Below are positions 51,835-59,361 of a DNA stretch of 64,000 nucleotides, one piece after another. The translations under genes and the position numbers were made by a program. A model generated the notes under the pieces. The model was given only the letters and a program-made list of their open reading frames with translations. It ran no database searches and was not told where the DNA came from. Position 1 is the stretch's first letter. Each line of letters opens with the position of its first letter. Location: sequence record OP991903.1; one strand, 5' to 3'.

Positions 51835-52347
51835 ATGTCAAACCACATTCTGTACGGGGAAATGCACACTCGAGATGACCGCGACCGTATTGAACGGTTG
51901 ATACGGGAAGCTCACCGCGAAGCTCCGTTTAAGTACCTTCTGACCGAAGAGGCGGGTCCGTATCGCTACCTGAGCAAGTTAGCCTTACAGCAAGCCATCA
52001 AAGGGCAGATGTACAGTATCAGTGACCGTTCGTTTAAGTTGGGCATCGAGTTGGGGATTCCGGTTATTGGGATTGACAACTGGGATGACAAGACCTACGA
52101 GCGGGATAAGAAGTGGCCAGACGGTCGCTACCTGGATTGTCGATACAGTTTCAACATCCGTGAGCACCAGATGGTAAGAACATTGAACGAGTACGCCCCG
52201 AAAGGCCGCGTCGCGCTCATTGTCGGGGACAGTCACCTGCGCAGCCAGCGAAATCTGGTGATGGGAACGGCATCCCCGCTATACACGCAGTTCGTTGATA
52301 AATCAGGGTTTGAGATTATCCGCTCACCGAAAGGTGAGGCACGTTGA
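51835..52347 (+). CDS. EreA/ChaN/Tiki-superfamily-like putative metalloenzyme
   Basis: ILYGEMH, LLTEE, IGID, ALIVGDSHLR motifs; ATG 51835 with GGAG RBS. Confidence 0.5.
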   Translation: MSNHILYGEMHTRDDRDRIERLIREAHREAPFKYLLTEEAGPYRYLSKLALQQAIKGQMYSISDRSFKLGIELGIPVIGIDNWDDKTYERDKKWPDGRYLDCRYSFNIREHQMVRTLNEYAPKGRVALIVGDSHLRSQRNLVMGTASPLYTQFVDKSGFEIIRSPKGEAR

Positions 52348-52413
52348 TTAAATTTCATTCCTTTTTTACGCCGACCTGTTATTAGATGAATAACCACAGA
52401 AGAGAAAAGGCTT

Positions 52414-52584
52414 ATGTCTACACCTGCCAAAAAAGATGACGATTTGTTTGACGGTGAGTTTAACCTCCCGGACGAGGTCCTGGAGCAAGCGGCTGCCCAT
52501 GCAGATGCAGTAGCTGACCGTCCGCCGGAAGTTGAGTACAAACCTGGCGACGATGAATGCGAGGGTGGTGCCTGCAAAATCTAA
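52414..52584 (+). CDS. 56-aa acidic protein ending in NrdA-like redox tail (not in ORF track)
   Basis: MSTPAKKDDDLFDGEFNLPDEVLEQAAAHADAVADRPPEVEYKPGDDECEGGACKI; AAAGG RBS. Confidence 0.75.
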   Translation: MSTPAKKDDDLFDGEFNLPDEVLEQAAAHADAVADRPPEVEYKPGDDECEGGACKI

Positions 52585-52635
52585 GCATGTAACACTACGG
52601 TGGTTCGGGGGCACGGAGGCTCCCGTAACAATTTT

Positions 52636-52658
52636 AAGAACTATATTACCGTAGTGAC
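52636..52658 (+). promoter_or_regulatory. early-type promoter
   Basis: TATATTAC at 52642-52649 followed by CGTAGTGAC. Confidence 0.7.
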
Positions 52659-52685
52659 TGCTAAGTTAATAGGAGCAGGTACAAC

Positions 52686-53261
52686 ATGTTAATTCGACGT
52701 AAAGTAGCGCCTAGTCAATTCACCTTAACGCCGTGCCCGGACTGCAATTCGACCAACTTGCAAATCCTGGGTTCGTACAAACAAGGTGAGTTCCGGATAC
52801 GTTGCAGGCATTGCGGTCATCGTGGTCGCAACTCGCACACGTTGTTGTCCGGAATCCTGAACTGGGTAAGCCCGTGGCGAGATGACCTTCGCCATGCGCT
52901 CATCTCCCCGTTCACTGCTCGCGACATTCTGAAGAAGAACCTAAGTGAGTTTCAGGGGAAGGTAGATATACGTCCAGACTACCTGACATCATTAAACGCG
53001 ACAATTGTTCGTGTGTTTACGCCGGGCGCGGTGTATATCGCCGTCTATTACGTTACGCCAGATGGTGGAGATGGTTTTGCCGTCTTTGTTCCCGGTGATT
53101 ACGGAACACTCGGCACTCTCGTTGGTACGTTCACCGACGGGGGATACCAAACAATCGTTGAAAACCCACTGCTCGACCAAGAGGTGTTTTTAGAATTCCT
53201 CAAGGTGGTTCGTCGGGTTATCAGGGAAATCATGATAAGTCAACTGACCGAAGGAAAATAG
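52686..53261 (+). CDS. Lar-like Zn-finger protein with C-terminal extension
   Basis: LTPCPDC-x18-CRHCG.RG matches the Lar restriction-alleviation family pattern. Confidence 0.5.
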   Translation: MLIRRKVAPSQFTLTPCPDCNSTNLQILGSYKQGEFRIRCRHCGHRGRNSHTLLSGILNWVSPWRDDLRHALISPFTARDILKKNLSEFQGKVDIRPDYLTSLNATIVRVFTPGAVYIAVYYVTPDGGDGFAVFVPGDYGTLGTLVGTFTDGGYQTIVENPLLDQEVFLEFLKVVRRVIREIMISQLTEGK

Positions 53262-53262
53262 G

Positions 53263-53433
53263 ATGAGTAACGCAGACCCGAAGCTTCTGAAGAAGCCGTT
53301 CTTGACGGGGACGATTTTAAACAAACCCTGGGCATGTTTCCCGACCGACCAGGGACCGGTAATGGTTAGACTACCCGAACAACCTTCGGTGTACCACATT
53401 ACCCTCTCAGACGAAAAGCCGAGGGCTGCATGA
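53263..53433 (+). CDS. small hypothetical protein (56 aa, not in ORF track)
   Basis: MSNADPKLLKK...EKPRAA; AAGGA RBS; ATGA overlap with next gene. Confidence 0.6.
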   Translation: MSNADPKLLKKPFLTGTILNKPWACFPTDQGPVMVRLPEQPSVYHITLSDEKPRAA

Positions 53434-53852
53434 TTCTTAAACCTCAGTCGAGTGATGACCAACTTGACGACTTCCTGATGCCGTTGTCAGTATTACTTCC
53501 AGAGCCGTTGGCTCTGGTTACTGAACGGGTCGGTGGGGTTATCTCCCCTGACCTCGTCATTGCCGCGCGAGTCTTGAAACCGCTCCTCGGCAATCCCATT
53601 CTGTCTATTGATAATACTAACTGGATTACCACTGCGGTAACCTGGTGTCAGTGTTATCGCGGACAGTATAAGTTGCAAGAAGGGTGTAGCATTCTGGGCT
53701 ACAAACTGCACGAGCGCTACCAGATAGCGTTCCACGCAAAGACCCTTTGTGCACTGTTCGGGTATCTCGGTCCCATCTTGGAGGCGCACTACCCGGACGA
53801 TAAGCGTCAGTTGTTTACTGACGTGACAATTGGCGGTATAGCCCTGTCGTAG
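53430..53852 (+). CDS. hypothetical protein
   Basis: 140 aa. Confidence 0.65.
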   Translation: MILKPQSSDDQLDDFLMPLSVLLPEPLALVTERVGGVISPDLVIAARVLKPLLGNPILSIDNTNWITTAVTWCQCYRGQYKLQEGCSILGYKLHERYQIAFHAKTLCALFGYLGPILEAHYPDDKRQLFTDVTIGGIALS

Positions 53853-53931
53853 TAAAACGTTTTAAACGGACGCCCGGACACACGGGCGACGTTACTAATT
53901 CAATTCGTTACGAACAAAAGGAAAGACCACC

Positions 53932-54015
53932 ATGATTAACACGGGATGTTTGACACTGTCACCACCGTTGTTATTTATCACCATATCCGTGGGAAACGTA
54001 CACTGCACTCCTTAA
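53932..54015 (+). CDS. possible 27-aa peptide
   Basis: MINTGCLTLSPPLLFITISVGNVHCTP with AAGGA RBS in a long intergenic gap. Confidence 0.3.
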   Translation: MINTGCLTLSPPLLFITISVGNVHCTP

Positions 54016-54128
54016 AGTCATTTTTTACGGAGTCGATTGGACTTATGTAGTTAAGTGGAAGCTAAAACTCTATTCACCTGCACCCAATACGGATATGAAC
54101 TCAATCACTGTATTAAGGAGTCTCGACA

Positions 54129-54563
54129 ATGTCAATGAACAGCATTACTGAGCGCGTCCTAACTGCACATGAACGTGGGTTCACCGATGACATGATTTCG
54201 GCCTACGAAGGTGTACCAGTTGATGACGTCAAAGCGGTTATCGAAACTTTCAACGAACCATCTGTCCCCGGCAACGTAAGGGATATTCAAATCCATCGCC
54301 AGGCTCAACGTTTTCTGGACCGTCACGACCTTGAAGAAATCACCTCAAGAATTGACGACCACCGGACGAACGCGTTAGCGGATAACACTAACCCAGAGCT
54401 GGAAGCCGTTACCGGTTTAGTCGACCAATATCGACTGGACCCTGAAGTGGCAACGGAAGTCTTTGCCGATGTCTCTCGTCGCCGTCGCGTCGTGGACCTG
54501 GAGCAAGAAGACCGTGTCATGCGCAACCGTGGTCGTGTTGAGCGTACCTGGGCCGCGCGCTAA
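54129..54563 (+). CDS. hypothetical protein, HTH-like N-terminus
   Basis: 144 aa, AAGGAG RBS, TAC-N15-TATG upstream. Confidence 0.7.
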   Translation: MSMNSITERVLTAHERGFTDDMISAYEGVPVDDVKAVIETFNEPSVPGNVRDIQIHRQAQRFLDRHDLEEITSRIDDHRTNALADNTNPELEAVTGLVDQYRLDPEVATEVFADVSRRRRVVDLEQEDRVMRNRGRVERTWAAR

Positions 54564-54577
54564 GTGAAGAATGGTCG

Positions 54578-54626
54578 TAGGTAGGGTGGCCTTCGGGCTA
54601 CTCTGCCTCGGCTGTCTTTTTTATTT
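54578..54626 (+). terminator. intrinsic terminator
   Basis: GGTAGGGTGGCC-TTCG-GGCTACTCTGCC plus T run. Confidence 0.6.
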
Positions 54627-54637
54627 TCATTGGAGGA

Positions 54638-54994
54638 ATGATGGACGAAGAAGAGAATTGGCTCGACCCGTTAAAAGATGCGATTAAAAACGGGGAGAAA
54701 GGCCCATTCGTTATTGACCCTAAGGAACGGAAGGTGGTCGTTCTTGGGGCTGGGATGGGGAGTATTGGTGGGGCGTTGCTCAGGGAAATGCGTCACAGTC
54801 AAGGGCTCTTCCCCAATACTGAGGAGTATGCCCGGGGTTTACGCAGCAAGGTCGAGAACTTAGACTGTATTGCTGAACTAGGTTCGCCGGTAGAAGGTAA
54901 GCGTTTACGTAGTGATGGCCGTCGCGAACTGATGATGAACAACGCCGGGACTATGGCCTGGCCTGCACCCAAACAACGCAGAGGAAGAAGATAA
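54638..54994 (+). CDS. hypothetical protein with shared C-terminal NxxGT motif (1 of 4)
   Basis: Ends RRELMMNNAGTMAWPAPKQRRGRR. Confidence 0.75.
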   Translation: MMDEEENWLDPLKDAIKNGEKGPFVIDPKERKVVVLGAGMGSIGGALLREMRHSQGLFPNTEEYARGLRSKVENLDCIAELGSPVEGKRLRSDGRRELMMNNAGTMAWPAPKQRRGRR

Positions 54995-55869
54995 TGGAAA
55001 AGAAAGATAAAGGCGTATCGTTGAATATTGGTTCACTCAACGTTCCTAATCGCAATGGGGTAAGCTACTCGCCCGACGCAATAGAAGCGGCGCTAGAGCG
55101 GGCTCTCGATGGCAGTAAGGTCTCCGCCAACGCAGCACTGTTCCCCAACGGTCAGATTCCTAACTTCGCCCAATTCCTGAAAATGATTGCGCCGCATCTT
55201 AGTGAAGAGAAGATTCGCATGATGGCTGAGATGGCCGAACGGATGCCAGACTACCCTGACATCGCCGCTAAACATCACCATGGTCAGGAACTCTTTGACC
55301 GCATTAAAGCACGGATGGCCAATGAACCGGCGGGCTTCAAGGTTCTTACGATGCGGGCACCGACCCCGACAGACTGGAATAAAGAATTTGACGAGTTAGG
55401 CTTGGGTCGTAAAGAAGCCGACGTCGAAATCAGTATCTCGCCGCGTATGATTGACGGACAGGTTGTCTCGTACGGCGTTGTGAAAAGTCGTCAGGGTCAC
55501 CCCGATGCACTGAACGTTGAGATTGACTCTTTACCTAACTGGTTGCGTGACGTCGACCTGCCACTGGACCCCATTGACCGGGACGTTCAATGTCAGTACC
55601 TGAACGAGATTAGACCCAACGAACCAAGTGCGCGTCTAAAGCGCTCGCTTGATAAACTTGACGGTGGGGTGAAGGCGGTAACGTTGGATATCCCTGACCC
55701 CTTCGGTTCCAGTCCTGGTTGCCGTAGTCTACTTAACACCTTCGGTTCAGCGCGTCAACGGGTCAATGGTGACATCACGGTGAACGGCAAACAACGCAAG
55801 GAGTTGGTTACCAATGCCAAAGGGACGATGGTCTTCCCACGAGCAAAACAAAAGTTCGGTCGTCGATAA
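54994..55869 (+). CDS. hypothetical protein with protease-like N-motif and shared C-terminal motif (2 of 4)
   Basis: Ends RKELVTNAKGTMVFPRAKQKFGRR; N-terminal IGSLNVPNRNGVSY. Confidence 0.8.
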   Translation: MEKKDKGVSLNIGSLNVPNRNGVSYSPDAIEAALERALDGSKVSANAALFPNGQIPNFAQFLKMIAPHLSEEKIRMMAEMAERMPDYPDIAAKHHHGQELFDRIKARMANEPAGFKVLTMRAPTPTDWNKEFDELGLGRKEADVEISISPRMIDGQVVSYGVVKSRQGHPDALNVEIDSLPNWLRDVDLPLDPIDRDVQCQYLNEIRPNEPSARLKRSLDKLDGGVKAVTLDIPDPFGSSPGCRSLLNTFGSARQRVNGDITVNGKQRKELVTNAKGTMVFPRAKQKFGRR

Positions 55870-56098
55870 GAAACTGATACTCGACGCCATCGAATATATG
55901 TCGATGTCGGAGGTTATTGAACTTATCTCGGCTATTGAAGAAAAGCAATCGAAGGAGGAAAAGATGAGCTTTGTATGGTTAGGTAAAAAAGACAAGATGC
56001 CGCAGAACTCCCGGCGTCATTATCAAACGAATCCGGATGGGACATTCGCCTACCCGGTACCAGACCGCAAGAAGGGGCACCGTAAACATGGAAAATAA
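55814..56098 (+). CDS. bL12 (L7/L12) N-terminal-domain-containing protein with shared C-terminal motif (3 of 4)
   Basis: DKKLILDAIEYMSMSEVIELISAIEEK vs E. coli bL12 [27 protein letters not shown] (14/27 identical); AAGGAG RBS at 55798; internal in-frame start at 55964. Confidence 0.7.
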   Translation: MPKGRWSSHEQNKSSVVDKKLILDAIEYMSMSEVIELISAIEEKQSKEEKMSFVWLGKKDKMPQNSRRHYQTNPDGTFAYPVPDRKKGHRKHGK

Positions 56099-56333
56099 AG
56101 AAGAGCATTTACCACTTACCACCCTCACCACTGAGAAGGGTCCAGACCCGGTGAGCGACAAGGTAAAGCAGGTGGCGAACCAGTTAGTGCAGCGTTATGT
56201 GCGCCAGCAAAAACTGGAGGAACAGGCTAAAAAGGACCCCATGTTCAACCTACGGGTGGCGCTACTGCGCGGAAACCCTAACCGTTCGAACGGTACCAGC
56301 TGGAATCTTCCGGGTAAGAAACGGCGGTGGTAA
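56088..56333 (+). CDS. hypothetical protein with related basic C-terminal motif (4 of 4)
   Basis: ATG 56088; ends NRSNGTSWNLPGKKRRW. Confidence 0.65.
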   Translation: MENKEEHLPLTTLTTEKGPDPVSDKVKQVANQLVQRYVRQQKLEEQAKKDPMFNLRVALLRGNPNRSNGTSWNLPGKKRRW

Positions 56334-56398
56334 CCGCCTTTATCCGTCCCATCGGGAACTCAATTCCCTAACCCAATCATTTTTTAAGTGCGGTACTC

Positions 56399-56677
56399 AT
56401 GTCTGTGAATAACTTTGACTATCAGGAAGTGGAAGAGATAATTGATTTCCTCTCAACCATCACCCTCTGTTATCATTTTAATAATGGTAATGCTCGGAAA
56501 ATAAAGAAGTGCGCGCGCTCCATGAAAGCACGATTCACTCGCCGTACTCCGAGACGTTACTGCGATAAAATAATAGAGGAGCCTGAGGATGCGTTCTTCA
56601 TCATTAACACAATTAGCAGCGGTCACTTTAACGTTCTGGCCCTGCGCGATTCTTCAAAGCAATTCCTATCCGTTTAA
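56399..56677 (+). CDS. hypothetical protein
   Basis: 92 aa. Confidence 0.6.
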   Translation: MSVNNFDYQEVEEIIDFLSTITLCYHFNNGNARKIKKCARSMKARFTRRTPRRYCDKIIEEPEDAFFIINTISSGHFNVLALRDSSKQFLSV

Positions 56678-56710
56678 GTATAATCCCGTACCCATCTCAG
56701 GGGGTCCACC

Positions 56711-57676
56711 GTGAATAACTTTTTTGTATTTTATCACGCACTGTGCATCGACGGATTTTCCGCCGCTGCAACTTTGTGGCGTGCGTTACCGAGCGCAACT
56801 TACCGACCAGTCCACTATAACTCCCCGCTGCCGTTAGAAGGAGTTGGCCAGGGCGATACGCTGTACTTCGTTGATTTTGCACCACCGCCTGAGGAAATCA
56901 GTAACCTCGCGAAGTTAGAGCCTGCTCGCGTTGTTATCCTCGACCATCATGCGTCAATGGTTGACGCGTATGCAAAAGCGGACTGCCCAGAGTTTCAAGC
57001 CGTGCTCCGTGCTGCTAATGTTGAGCTGACATTAGACGGAACACGTTCTGGTGCAGGGTTGACCTGGGCGCATCTGTACCCGGACACACCGCTCCCCTAT
57101 GTACTCGCTTGTGTACAAGACCGTGACCTCTGGCAGTTCAAACTTCCAGACTCGCGGGACTTCTACGAGTTCTTCATCCTTTTCCTCAACAAACCGTTCT
57201 CTGAGTTCAACCGTTTAATCGACGATGTTGGCGTGGTTAACGACGGTGTCTTCTCCTCGACCATGGGTGCCACGGCATACCTCGGCGTGAAAGAAGCCTC
57301 AGAAGCGTTGAAGGAAAAACGAGATGTCGAGATTCAATTCCACCTCGATAACTGTCTGACCGAATGGCCGTTTGGCGATTCAGGTAAGATGGCTGTCGTG
57401 AACTGTCACCGCCCTATTACCTCGGAACTTTGCGACCGCATCAAAGATTCATATGACGTGGTTGCTTGTTATTTCCATCGTAAAATGGGGTCGATGGTTT
57501 CACTGCGTTCAAAAGACTATAACGTCCGCTTTCTGGCTGAGAAGCTGGGCGGGGGTGGTCATGCGAACGCGGCAGGTGTGGAGCTGTTTTTCGCCATTAC
57601 GCCGGAAACACTTGCTGCCATGCTCTTCGATGCTAACAAAGAACTTCATGCTGCAAGTGAGGCTGAGAATGGATGA
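56711..57676 (+). CDS. DHH/DHHA1 family phosphoesterase
   Basis: YH..CIDG..AA, VDF, LDHH, SLRS, GGGHANAAG. Confidence 0.9.
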   Translation: MNNFFVFYHALCIDGFSAAATLWRALPSATYRPVHYNSPLPLEGVGQGDTLYFVDFAPPPEEISNLAKLEPARVVILDHHASMVDAYAKADCPEFQAVLRAANVELTLDGTRSGAGLTWAHLYPDTPLPYVLACVQDRDLWQFKLPDSRDFYEFFILFLNKPFSEFNRLIDDVGVVNDGVFSSTMGATAYLGVKEASEALKEKRDVEIQFHLDNCLTEWPFGDSGKMAVVNCHRPITSELCDRIKDSYDVVACYFHRKMGSMVSLRSKDYNVRFLAEKLGGGGHANAAGVELFFAITPETLAAMLFDANKELHAASEAENG

Positions 57677-58172
57677 AATCTCTGGGGCACCATCACTGTT
57701 AAAGATGTGTGGCATCAGTATGGAATCACGCTACCTGGAAAAGGTGGTGGATTTCAACTATAGCGTCAATGACGATTTGGGAGGTACGGCGTCGATTGAT
57801 TTGCGCGACGTGTCCTGCATCTCTGTCAATAAGCAACGTAAAGGGAACTTGTGGGTGCTGAACTTCGGTCCACGGAGCAAGGCGAACAATTCCATTTGCA
57901 TGTACTATAAAAGCGAAATGGCGACAGAGCTGGTACGTTCGACCATGTCTGCTGAGAAGAAGCGTCAAATTGAACACGACGAGGCAGCCTATGCAAACCT
58001 TAGTATCCCGGTTGAACCAGTGCAAGCAATCCCTGCAACACTGGCTGAAGAAAATCACGACCCGCGTTTCGATGGAGAAAGTCATCCGCGTGGAAACGGC
58101 TACTGGCGTGTACTTCTTCGACGCTTGTTCGGTCGTGTCCGTGAGCGAACCCACAATGAGCGGGTTGACTAA
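57669..58172 (+). CDS. hypothetical protein
   Basis: Start ATG 57669 coupled to DHH gene. Confidence 0.6.
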   Translation: MDEISGAPSLLKMCGISMESRYLEKVVDFNYSVNDDLGGTASIDLRDVSCISVNKQRKGNLWVLNFGPRSKANNSICMYYKSEMATELVRSTMSAEKKRQIEHDEAAYANLSIPVEPVQAIPATLAEENHDPRFDGESHPRGNGYWRVLLRRLFGRVRERTHNERVD

Positions 58173-58335
58173 TTACCGTCAAGCAGTGATGGTCGTGAAG
58201 TCAACAACACAAGGCACTGTTCCAGTTACAACGGTAACGTTGGAAGAGCTGGAAGTTACGTACAGAAATCTCGTTGAGGGTATCTCGGCTATTCGGGCCC
58301 CGGTACAGACCATCCTTCAACGTACTTCTATGTAG
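58072..58335 (+). CDS. hypothetical protein
   Basis: Start ATG 58072 uncertain; overlaps previous gene. Confidence 0.45.
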   Translation: MEKVIRVETATGVYFFDACSVVSVSEPTMSGLTNYRQAVMVVKSTTQGTVPVTTVTLEELEVTYRNLVEGISAIRAPVQTILQRTSM

Positions 58336-58365
58336 CAAGTGCATTGCCGCATTATCATACCTTTT

Positions 58366-58394
58366 GAAGGAGCTTCGGCTCCTTCTTTTTTTTT
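58366..58394 (+). terminator. intrinsic terminator
   Basis: GAAGGAGC-TTCG-GCTCCTTC plus T run. Confidence 0.8.
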
Positions 58395-58405
58395 GTTTCA
58401 AACGG

Positions 58406-58439
58406 GCATAAAGGAGGGCGAAAGCCCTCCTTTTTTTTT
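58406..58439. terminator. bidirectional terminator
   Basis: GCATAAAGGAGGGC-GAAA-GCCCTCCTTTTTTTT. Confidence 0.8.
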
Positions 58440-58446
58440 GCTGTCT

Positions 58447-59361
58447 CTACAGTTGGAGTTCCAGTACGGGACGCCAGTTGTAGTAGTTACTGGACCAGGC
58501 CACGGTACTTGGCACATCTGATGCAAGCGTGGCGAACATTTGAACGATGGTTCCGTTAGCCGTCATGTGCTGCGTCAAGGCACCGGTGAAGAGGGTGTTA
58601 TTGGTGCTGTATACCGGTTTGTTACCCAGGCGTGAGCGCGTACTAAAGTTGTACGTACCACAACCCAACCGTCCCATCGTGCGGTTCCACTCACCCTCAC
58701 CCCAGCGCACGTCGCCATTCGTCAGGTCGGTCACCAGCTCCGACGTTGGCGCAGCAGTGGCCTTCATGAGGCGGACCAGGTAGGTACGGTTGTTCTTAGT
58801 CACTGTTTTCTTTTGGTTGTAGTTACCACCAGAAAACGACGCCGGGCGGTCCCCGTAACCGTCTACCCCGTACACCAAGCCAGCGCGGTAGATGTATAAC
58901 CAACCATCTGCTGCCATACATAAATCCGGGATAAACAGGATTTTCCCATCCAGGATAAACTTGTGCCAGACATTGGACGCCGTGGTGTTGACCGCACCGT
59001 TGGGGACGTAACCTAACGCGGTACACAGTTCTTGCGCGGCAAACAATTCAGCTTGCGTACAGGTTCCGAAGTACCCTTCGTTCCAGTTCCCACGCAACAG
59101 TTTAGACGGTCCAGGACCGGTGTCCGGGAAGTAACCGTATTGTTGGTTCTGCGTGAAGATGACGTCGTCACCCTTGTAGCTACCGATAACGTAATAGTAC
59201 ACGGTGTTACGCGCAGCAGTAACATCAGAGAACGATGTGGCTGTTCCCGCTAAGGTGGCGATTGGGTCAGGAAGGGCTGACAACTCAATTTTACTGGTTG
59301 CGCGGTAAACCTTAATGGTGTCAGCATTATTAGGATTAGTAAAGGCGATACGAATAGACAT
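58447..59361 (-). CDS. virion fibre-like paralog (FN3/Ig-like N-domain plus family core)
   Basis: GPGP..L.RG.W..GYFG, WHKF..DGK.L..P, YG.D, EWN, WRPVLEL. Confidence 0.75.
   Translation of the reverse strand: MSIRIAFTNPNNADTIKVYRATSKIELSALPDPIATLAGTATSFSDVTAARNTVYYYVIGSYKGDDVIFTQNQQYGYFPDTGPGPSKLLRGNWNEGYFGTCTQAELFAAQELCTALGYVPNGAVNTTASNVWHKFILDGKILFIPDLCMAADGWLYIYRAGLVYGVDGYGDRPASFSGGNYNQKKTVTKNNRTYLVRLMKATAAPTSELVTDLTNGDVRWGEGEWNRTMGRLGCGTYNFSTRSRLGNKPVYSTNNTLFTGALTQHMTANGTIVQMFATLASDVPSTVAWSSNYYNWRPVLELQL

Follow-up and report, generated by a model that had tools for sequence, protein, structure and literature searches.

We analyzed a 64,000-nucleotide stretch of sequence record OP991903.1 (the window), and we focused on a cassette of four genes, A to D, at positions 54638–56333. 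The window comes from Erwinia phage vB_Ea277G (Iapetusvirus), a relative of PhiEaH1; the complete vB_Ea277G genome is 218 kb. All four ORFs lay where an earlier note on this DNA had placed them, with the C-termini that it had quoted. Three neighboring genes (A, B and C) ended in a common C-terminal module of ~35 residues, referred to below as the tag. The features of the locus were:

54573..54627, + strand: long hairpin followed by a T-tract, conserved, between an upstream 144-aa gene and gene A
54638..54994, + strand: gene A, an ORF of 118 aa; a mildly acidic, fast-evolving body, then the tag
54881..54991, + strand: tag of A, its last 37 residues (tag HMM E 6e-21)
54994..55869, + strand: gene B, 291 aa; a body without an assigned fold, then the tag
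55768..55866, + strand: tag of B, its last 33 residues (tag HMM E 4e-23)
55814..56098, + strand: gene C, long form, 94 aa; leader, bL12 N-terminal-domain-like segment, linker, tag
55862..55948, + strand: bL12 N-terminal-domain-like segment, residues 17–45 of the 94-residue C, aligned with bL12 residues 2–30/3–31
55964..56098, + strand: gene C, short form, 44 aa, tag only; the sole form in loci L009, L011, L018 and L019
55976..56095, + strand: tag of C, its last 40 residues (37/40 columns invariant in 7 loci)
56088..56333, + strand: gene D, 81 aa, helical with a basic end; a conserved cassette member without the tag

The four genes were tightly linked or overlapping: the A stop and B start shared 1 nt, and the start of D overlapped the end of C by 11 nt. 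The hairpin ahead of gene A had an 18-pair stem, and changes on both sides preserved 5 of the 32 predicted pairs (RNAalifold, 7-locus alignment). It may be a terminator-like, attenuator-like or 5' stabilizing hairpin; it was absent from the output of a simple terminator scan, and Rfam gave zero matches within 52000–59000. Virion genes lay directly downstream of the cassette on the opposite strand. For A–D, their neighbors, and the metagenomic proteins P0018, P0021 and P0023 described below, PADLOC defense profiles matched nothing, and NCBIfam gave one chance-level match, to the 144-aa neighbor (14 bits against a 539-bit cut-off).

The earlier note had assigned the DNA to a nucleus-forming phage, and the genome bore this out. 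A chimallin, the marker of Chimalliviridae-type (nucleus-forming) phages, was encoded at genome positions 112216–114186 (PF25677, 52.9 bits, cut-off 27), and tubulin-like and RNA polymerase beta-prime-like proteins were also encoded. NCBI taxonomy places Iapetusvirus under no family. The closest studied relative of vB_Ea277G is PCH45, which forms a nucleus. Among cultured phages, the cassette was found in PhiEaH1 and vB_Ea277G only; Serratia phage 2050HW had the downstream DUF7740–DHH module in common, and genes A–D were absent from it. Our literature search found no functional work on vB_Ea277G or Iapetusvirus.

The strict motif N-x-x-G-T-x-x-x-P occurred exactly three times in the six frames of the 64-kb window, and these were the ends of A, B and C, where the motif lay 18–22 residues ahead of the stop. 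No further C-terminal occurrence was present across the whole 218-kb genome. Composition-preserving shuffles attained three near-stop matches in 2 of 300 cases; thus, the expression by itself was just moderately unusual, and the profile evidence for a shared tag is stronger than the motif counts. The tag HMM matched A, B and C at E 1e-21 to 1e-23, and the next match among 5081 six-frame genome segments had an E of 0.34. HMMs built from single families also connected the three genes. The best non-self matches of the A-only HMM were B (2e-4) and C (0.012), the B-only HMM found A at 1e-5, and the C-only HMM found A at 0.019; that is, the similarity between the tags of A and B was clearer than that between B and C. 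The bodies of A and B had no detectable similarity other than in the last 24 residues, and neither gene had a paralog in the genome. Four consecutive proteins had been proposed to carry the tag, and this held for A, B and C and failed for D. The tag HMM did not match D, an hhalign comparison of the tag profile with the D family gave a probability of 0.1%, and the motif's G-T and its P were each present in only 1 of 10 orthologs. The 10 orthologs of D had their own conserved C-terminal pattern, ending in W.

In each tag, a basic cluster was followed by a predicted beta-hairpin (turn N-x-x-G), then by aromatic-Pro and a basic end; the final residues were variable. The net charge of the tags was +5 to +8 (+5 for the last 26 residues of A), whereas the bodies were mildly acidic. 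An AF2 model of A reached a pLDDT of 70–85 in the tag alone, where a turn was flanked by two short strands; the model of B was of low confidence (pLDDT 40).

Tags were retained in all orthologs, with three per locus in each of 10 related loci, and in each of A, B and C the tag was the slowest-evolving part. The pN/pS ratio was 0.02–0.20 in the tags against ~0.5 in the bodies, at near-saturated synonymous change. For A the values were 0.20 in the tag and 0.57 in the body, and for B they were 0.16 and 0.53. In B, 23 of the last 33 columns were identical across 9/9 family members, and the bodies were 35–64% identical. These values indicate strong purifying selection on the tags. Because pS in the C tag was 0.56 and pN only 0.013 (ratio 0.023), and because a search for DNA repeats or gene conversion between the tags found none, the data indicate that selection is on the protein and not on the DNA. 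The adjacency of the genes and the clearer A–B than B–C similarity could be expected of a functionless remnant left by an old tandem duplication or recombination. However, the tag is the most constrained part of each protein, with pN/pS of 0.02–0.20 where synonymous sites are nearly saturated, and the same tag recurs on other bodies in unrelated contigs. We consider this already disfavored explanation very improbable.

Searched against 1.84 billion proteins, the tag profile gave single-stretch matches to just 14 clusters. All 14 were C-terminal, ending 0–6 residues from the C-terminus. The proposal that the module is portable between unrelated bodies gained further body types from metagenomes: P0023 (207 aa) and the A-like proteins P0018, P0019, P0021 and P0029. 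Multi-stretch matches were Ig-like, cadherin-like, FG-GAP, MucBP and propeller repeat proteins, and covered the hairpin core only; many such beta-hairpin-rich repeat proteins aligned to profile positions 16–30 alone, which agrees with a hairpin core in the tag. Nothing significant was found in Pfam or in the PDB, all E. coli ribosomal proteins included (best E 0.29). A host origin of the tag was also considered, and no relative was found in 185,579 bacterial and archaeal genomes or in a JGI metagenome scan. IMG/VR held one contig with a tag match, from the same clade. Orthologs of A were present in all related loci. Remoter A-like proteins (P0014, P0016–P0019, P0021, P0029) had no recognizable conserved partner genes around them. 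Homologs of B formed only 8 clusters among 5.8 billion proteins. In a distant clade (L015–L017), the stretches covered held one tag-bearing protein only.

Gene B had been described as protease-like, and this was not supported. Residues 16–44 weakly matched the head-maturation-protease family phrog_17354 in 6/9 members (best E 7e-5), and matches to phrog_207 and phrog_3014 had E above 0.2. There was no Pfam protease match even at E 10 and no PDB match, and the 29-residue N-terminal motif was missing from one ortholog, P0007. The searches do not support B as a head maturation (prohead) protease.

In phage T4, the internal proteins come from a cluster of small genes whose products have unrelated, quickly diverging bodies but one conserved, short targeting peptide in common. 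The T4 capsid targeting sequence is N-terminal, is ~10 residues long and is cleaved by the prohead protease. Genes A, B and C resemble the T4 internal protein genes in their clustering, divergent bodies and conserved short peptide, which raises the idea that the tag is a delivery signal, either for packaging of internal or ejected proteins into the capsid or for docking to the nuclear shell or import machinery. Virion genes next to the cassette, the weak match of the B N-terminus to head-maturation-protease PHROGs, and the presence of chimallin would all fit such a role. In contrast to the T4 signal, the module shared here is C-terminal, ~35 residues long and basic; the cassette also runs on the strand opposite to the adjacent virion genes. 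No carrier besides A, B and C was found in 218 kb, and three adjacent carriers are too few for the tag to serve as a general signal for importing or packaging many cargos. The PicA nuclear import pathway (PMC11087766, PMC12908238) shares with our case the theme of selective protein targeting in a nucleus-forming phage, but known chimallivirus cargo is recognized via folded surfaces and not via a terminal signal (PMC12908238). We judged a delivery signal to be quite unlikely.

Gene C could be read in two forms. The long form begins with a 16-residue leader that overlaps the B tag in the +1 frame. Its ORF was open in the window and in L007, L008 and L010, an AAGGAG lay 9 nt upstream of its ATG, and pN/pS was 0.63 in its frame against 1.06 and 1.69 in the other frames, which is a weak signal. 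From homology and this weak signal we infer that the 94-residue protein is translated. An alternative start at 55898 lies downstream of the point where likeness to bL12 begins. The short form was preceded by a Shine-Dalgarno sequence 5–8 nt upstream in all loci; it is annotated in L011, L018 and L019, and it was present but uncalled in L009. These four loci form the one subclade from which the bL12-like part was absent.

The N-terminal domain of bL12 is a two-helix hairpin that dimerizes and binds the C-terminal helix of uL10; Diaconu et al. reportedly identified it in Cell in 2005 as the dimerizing, uL10-binding part. The most important claim of the earlier note, a bL12 N-terminal domain in the operon, held for the long form of C as a likeness in profile comparisons. 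The 10 best PDB matches of the C family profile were all L7/L12 chains (best E 1.1e-4), and hhalign against Salmonella bL12 gave a probability of 93.7% and an E of 1.9e-7, with 48% identity over 29 columns. Three of five long forms matched Pfam PF16320 (Ribosomal_L12_N; best E 2.8e-4), with the window's C at 16.8 bits and E 0.0055, below the 25-bit curated cut-off. Likeness to the bL12 N-terminal domain is thus supported at the profile level; it spans 29 residues and might serve only as a dimerization helix pair. C did not have the full bL12 architecture of hinge plus factor-binding C-terminal domain. Ribosomal_L12, the factor-binding domain, had no match in C, the hhalign alignment covered bL12 residues 3–31 only, and the C-terminal half of C was the tag. 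The bL12-like part had no DNA likeness to E. coli genomes. Searches of A, B and D as candidate uL10 mimics detected no likeness to uL10.

Arrest peptides typically contain W, P and basic residues. Each tag end adjoined or overlapped the next start, L014–L017 included, and the 33–40 conserved residues may correspond to the length of the exit tunnel. The tag could then act in cis as a nascent peptide in the tunnel, slowing termination and tuning coupled downstream translation. Yet overlapping starts are common among phage genomes, the last residues of the tags were variable, and known arrest motifs did not match. Action in cis would also leave the hairpin-like pattern and the bL12-like part unexplained, and we find it hardly plausible.

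A different role for the hairpin would be in assembly: the three tags would pack together, in the manner of C-terminal trimerization, into an A–B–C complex that does not involve the ribosome. Function would then sit in the bodies, and the bL12-like helices would merely dimerize C. Exactly three tags per genome in 10/10 loci of the clade, the tight linkage or overlap of their genes, the self-contained predicted hairpin, and a bL12 N-terminal domain that by its nature (and Pfam name) dimerizes are all in keeping with such a complex. Against it, the distant-clade stretches covered held a lone tag-bearing protein, though homo-oligomers would fit; partners in co-evolution usually change in concert, but these tags have hardly changed at all; and the two basic clusters are left without explanation. 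An assembly module that leaves the ribosome aside seems to us unlikely.

The tags were near-invariant while B bodies were as little as 35% identical, which is compatible with a target, for example a machine of the host, whose evolution is not tied to that of the phage. We tentatively favor a common docking or assembly module acting at the host ribosomal stalk, and we rate this reading as a real possibility somewhat short of an even chance. The ribosome-remodeling system suggested in the earlier note is a reasonable hypothesis. The homology of the tags, the selection on them, their rarity and the bL12 likeness of C are observations; from them we infer the ribosome as target, and every binding step. 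The tag would bring A, B and C to a single target of high conservation, for which the L7/L12 stalk of the host ribosome is the likeliest candidate. Long C would be a bL12 in which the factor-binding C-terminal domain has been swapped for the tag, and it could pair with host bL12 or sit on uL10 where a bL12 dimer would otherwise be. The tag might contact rRNA near the stalk, with A and B docking there by themselves, or it might link A and B to C. Since the bL12-like part was missing in L009, L011, L018 and L019, and L015–L017 had a single tag-bearing protein, the tag must work without the bL12-like part. In a bolder version, the phage would rebuild the stalk: long C would take the place of bL12 on uL10, and the tag would deliver A, B and the 44-residue peptide (which might compete) to the place of translation-factor recruitment. 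Alternatively, the tag would bind the nuclear shell, and C would tether ribosomes to its surface, at which phage mRNA emerges. We offer this version as speculation that is unlikely to be correct.

T4 DNA polymerase, gp33 and gp55 reach one partner, the clamp, via a short common C-terminal peptide. The tag is likewise a short C-terminal element common to different proteins, but it has no sequence likeness to the T4 ends and is longer and basic; chimalliviruses are said to lack a recognizable ring clamp (PMC13648698). Phage-encoded ribosomal protein domains are documented to enter E. coli ribosomes, and viruses encode domains of bS21, bL12 and bL9 (Mizuno et al. 2019, PMC6375957). Like those phages, vB_Ea277G apparently encodes part of an exchangeable ribosomal protein. 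In the viral bL9 of that study, the N-terminal domain that anchors the protein is kept and the C-terminal domain has been exchanged for a non-homologous sequence; we propose the same layout for C. However, the viral bL12 matches reported there are to Ribosomal_L12, the factor-binding C-terminal domain, whereas C copies the N-terminal domain only; and unlike in those cases, the bL12 piece of C is fused to a tag common to two other proteins. We found no published L12 N-terminal domain of phage origin. Binding of the 50S subunit by a chimallivirus protein is also on record: the early protein PhiKZ014 (PMC10914614), likewise from a nucleus-forming jumbo phage, targets the host large ribosomal subunit, as A–C may do. 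In contrast to what we propose, PhiKZ014 clamps 5S rRNA with folded domains, without ribosomal-protein mimicry or a shared terminal tag. PHROG scans of A–D gave no match to its family, phrog_16056.

Pieces of ribosomal proteins are known from phages, and the bL12 pieces reported are the factor-binding half. Here, in a jumbo phage of the nucleus-forming type, which relies on host ribosomes in the cytoplasm, a segment like the anchoring half of bL12 is joined to a new tag that has hardly changed and is common to two further proteins. On the sequence evidence, the combination suggests an undescribed route for phage proteins onto the host ribosome. If the proteins do not go to ribosomes, the tag would still be a clean, rare and portable C-terminal module under very strong selection. 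If they do, the cassette would show, in a defined example, a virus placing its own modules on the L7/L12 stalk, with a short peptide of known sequence targeting a conserved cellular machine, and it would offer a way into how these phages bias translation.

Four consecutive genes, A to D, with unrelated bodies occupy 54638–56333 of the window, and all four open reading frames and their C-termini were present as the earlier note had described. A, B and C end in a module of ~35 residues, which we call the tag, containing the strict motif N-x-x-G-T-x-x-x-P. The features of this cassette are:

54573–54627: conserved hairpin of 18 pairs with a T-tract, directly 5' of A's ribosome-binding site
54638–54994, + strand: A, open reading frame
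54994–55869, + strand: B, open reading frame
55814–55869, + strand: overlap of the end of B and long C; B's tag codons, in the +1 frame, encode the 16-residue leader of the 94-residue C
Candidate starts 55814, 55898 and 55964, end 56098, + strand: C, open reading frame
55950–55966, + strand: strong internal Shine-Dalgarno sequence, AAGGAGG, 5 nt before the ATG at 55964
56088–56333, + strand: D, open reading frame

The A stop and B start overlap by 1 nt, and D starts 11 nt inside C. The hairpin looks like a terminator or attenuator, with compensatory changes in 5 of 32 predicted pairs of its region (7 loci); it leaves no space for a promoter ahead of A. Just downstream of D, at 56399–58172, is a module common to many jumbo phages (DUF7740, a DHH/DHHA1 phosphoesterase and a 167-aa protein). 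In Serratia phage 2050HW the DUF7740-DHH module follows a DNA ligase instead of A–D; thus, A–D looks like a clade-specific insertion.

The strict motif occurred three times in the six frames of the window, at the ends of A, B and C, and the whole 218-kb genome held no further C-terminal instance. Because 2 of 300 shuffles gave at least three near-stop matches, the regular expression by itself is only moderately rare; the profile evidence is much stronger. Across 5081 six-frame genome segments, the tag HMM matched A, B and C with E values between 1e-21 and 1e-23, and the next best match had E 0.34. When HMMs were built from single families, their best non-self matches were the other tag families (A-only: B at 2e-4, C at 0.012; B-only: A at 1e-5; C-only: A at 0.019). 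The A and B bodies showed no similarity outside the last 24 residues, and no DNA repeat between the tags was found. The earlier claim that four proteins share the tag held for A, B and C but failed for D, which the tag HMM did not match in the six-frame genome search. The tag profile aligned to the D family with an hhalign probability of 0.1%, and among ten D orthologs the G-T and the Pro were each present in the window copy alone. D ends in a conserved basic stretch of its own whose last residue is Trp; it is a cassette member without a tag.

The motif was conserved in orthologs, with exactly three tag matches per locus in all 10 clade loci. A search of 5.8 billion proteins returned just 8 clusters of B homologs, on contigs with identical gene order and with all four genes wherever the contig reached far enough. 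In the last 33 columns of the B family, 23 were identical in 9/9 members, and the bodies shared 35–64% identity; C had 37 invariant columns among its last 40 (7 loci). Codon analysis of 8 loci gave pN/pS values of 0.20 in the tag and 0.57 in the body for A, 0.16 and 0.53 for B, and 0.023 (pS 0.56) in the tag of C, whose body value, from ~4 codons, is not meaningful. These tag values indicate that the constraint acts on the protein, not the DNA. We consider it most improbable that the tag is a remnant without function, and equally so that it acts through a nascent-peptide effect.

One Arg, an Asn, the Gly-Thr, the Pro and a late Gly were invariant across the three tags, whose net charge was +5 to +8, the bodies being mildly acidic. 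An AF2 model of A was poor overall (pLDDT 55); the tag was its sole confident stretch (block means 70, 85, 70), predicted as two short strands flanking the N-x-x-G turn. No relative of the tag was found in PDB or Pfam.

A profile of the A, B and C tags, searched against 1.84 billion representative proteins (E up to 1e-3), returned 32 matches. Fourteen were single stretches covering most of the profile, and all 14 ended 0–6 residues from the C-terminus: four B-family clusters, eight A-like, one C, and P0023, a 207-residue metagenomic protein with the tag on a new body. The other 18 were multi-stretch; the eight of these scanned against Pfam were large repeat proteins (Ig-like, cadherin-like, FG-GAP, MucBP, propellers) matching the hairpin core of the tag alone, many-fold. 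P0018, encoded on a 101-kb contig from a distant jumbo phage, could be aligned to A along 87 residues, the body among them (E 1e-11); A is thus the most widespread carrier. The stretches examined of the distant clade held one tag only. There, the A-like P0019 (L016:1528–1857) ends in basic residues and Trp, as D does, and a 250-residue neighbour (L017:9110–9862) ends in a W-P-K-P stretch missed by the tag HMM; both ends are possibly degenerate tags. A scan of 185,579 genomes of bacteria and archaea found no tag relative, IMG/VR contained one matching contig, and the only cultured phages with a match were PhiEaH1 and vB_Ea277G.

The proposed likeness of C to the bL12 N-terminal domain was supported at the profile level, although the window copy alone scored 16.8 bits against Pfam Ribosomal_L12_N, below the cut-off of 25. 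All 10 PDB matches of the C family profile were L7/L12 chains (best E 1.1e-4), with profile positions 17–45 aligning to bL12 residues 2–30. Against Salmonella bL12, taken from a Salmonella contig returned by a search, hhalign gave a probability of 93.7% (E 1.9e-7, 48% identity over 29 columns), and 3/5 long forms matched the Pfam family (best E 2.8e-4). The phage collection includes bacterial whole-genome contigs (Salmonella, AFYI01000006.1, AGRM01000005.1), which account for the host-type rplJ-rplL genes among the matches. At the DNA level the bL12-like segment did not resemble E. coli genomes, and it was not found in other phages of the collection searched.

The likeness starts at bL12's first residues and, in the DNA, exactly at B's stop; the start at 55814 is therefore needed, and it has AAGGAG 9 nt upstream within B's tag codons. 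Read in the +1 frame, those codons also hold the Shine-Dalgarno sequence and ATG of long C. The loci with the long form (the window, PhiEaH1, L020, L007, L008, L010 and L012) cover the deepest splits within the clade. In the subclade L009, L011, L018 and L019, whose D proteins resemble one another, the bL12-like segment is missing, C has 44 residues, and the +1 frame over B's tag is closed after three codons. Because the Shine-Dalgarno sequence at the 44-residue start was kept in all loci, long-form genomes may make both the 94-residue C and a 44-residue tag-only peptide.

The description of B as protease-like was not supported. B had no relatives in Pfam, NCBIfam, PADLOC or PDB and no detectable protease domain; a short N-terminal motif (residues 16–44, 55039–55125), absent from one ortholog, weakly matched head-maturation-protease PHROGs (best E 7e-5, in one ortholog). 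The A-like bodies (A residues 34–51, 54737–54790, and orthologs) share a hydrophobic strand, Gly-rich loop and helix that recall nucleotide-binding folds, a likeness limited by the shortness of the body and the poor quality of the models. No uL10 likeness was found in A, B or D.

The window matched Erwinia phage vB_Ea277G (OP991903.1) at 100% identity with the same coordinates, and PhiEaH1 at 99.3%; both are 218-kb jumbo phages of genus Iapetusvirus, and every gene of the region is annotated "hypothetical". NCBI taxonomy gives Iapetusvirus no family and does not file it under Chimalliviridae, but the earlier placement there was right in substance, given a chimallin-family gene, a tubulin-like gene, the two polymerase-related proteins named below and the phage nucleus formed by Serratia phage PCH45, the nearest studied relative. 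The first two genes lie outside the window and are annotated merely as hypothetical or tubulin-like:

OP991903.1 103210–104178 (L003:40211–41179): tubulin-like gene
OP991903.1 112216–114186 (L004:217–2187): chimallin-family gene (PF25677, 52.9 bits against a cut-off of 27)

The genome also encodes a divergent family-B DNA polymerase and an RNA polymerase beta-prime-like protein. That the tag delivers its carriers to a phage structure is nevertheless unlikely: three genes alone carry it, which disfavours a general import or packaging signal, and chimallivirus cargo is recognised without a terminal signal (PMC12908238).

Viral bL12 domains reported to date are the C-terminal factor-binding domain (PMC6375957), whereas C resembles the N-terminal domain; we found no literature report of a phage copy of that domain, nor of the A/B/C tag. 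Phage-encoded exchangeable ribosomal protein domains enter ribosomes (PMC6375957), and direct 50S binding by a phage protein is documented (PMC10914614). The tags could instead be a co-assembly module independent of the ribosome, which we regard as doubtful. The tag is basic, almost frozen across diverged phages and, in one carrier, fused to the stalk-anchoring domain of bL12. On these grounds, together with the few carriers, the cargo literature and the ribosomal precedents, our tentative preference is for a shared module for docking or assembly that would act at the host ribosome through predicted binding.
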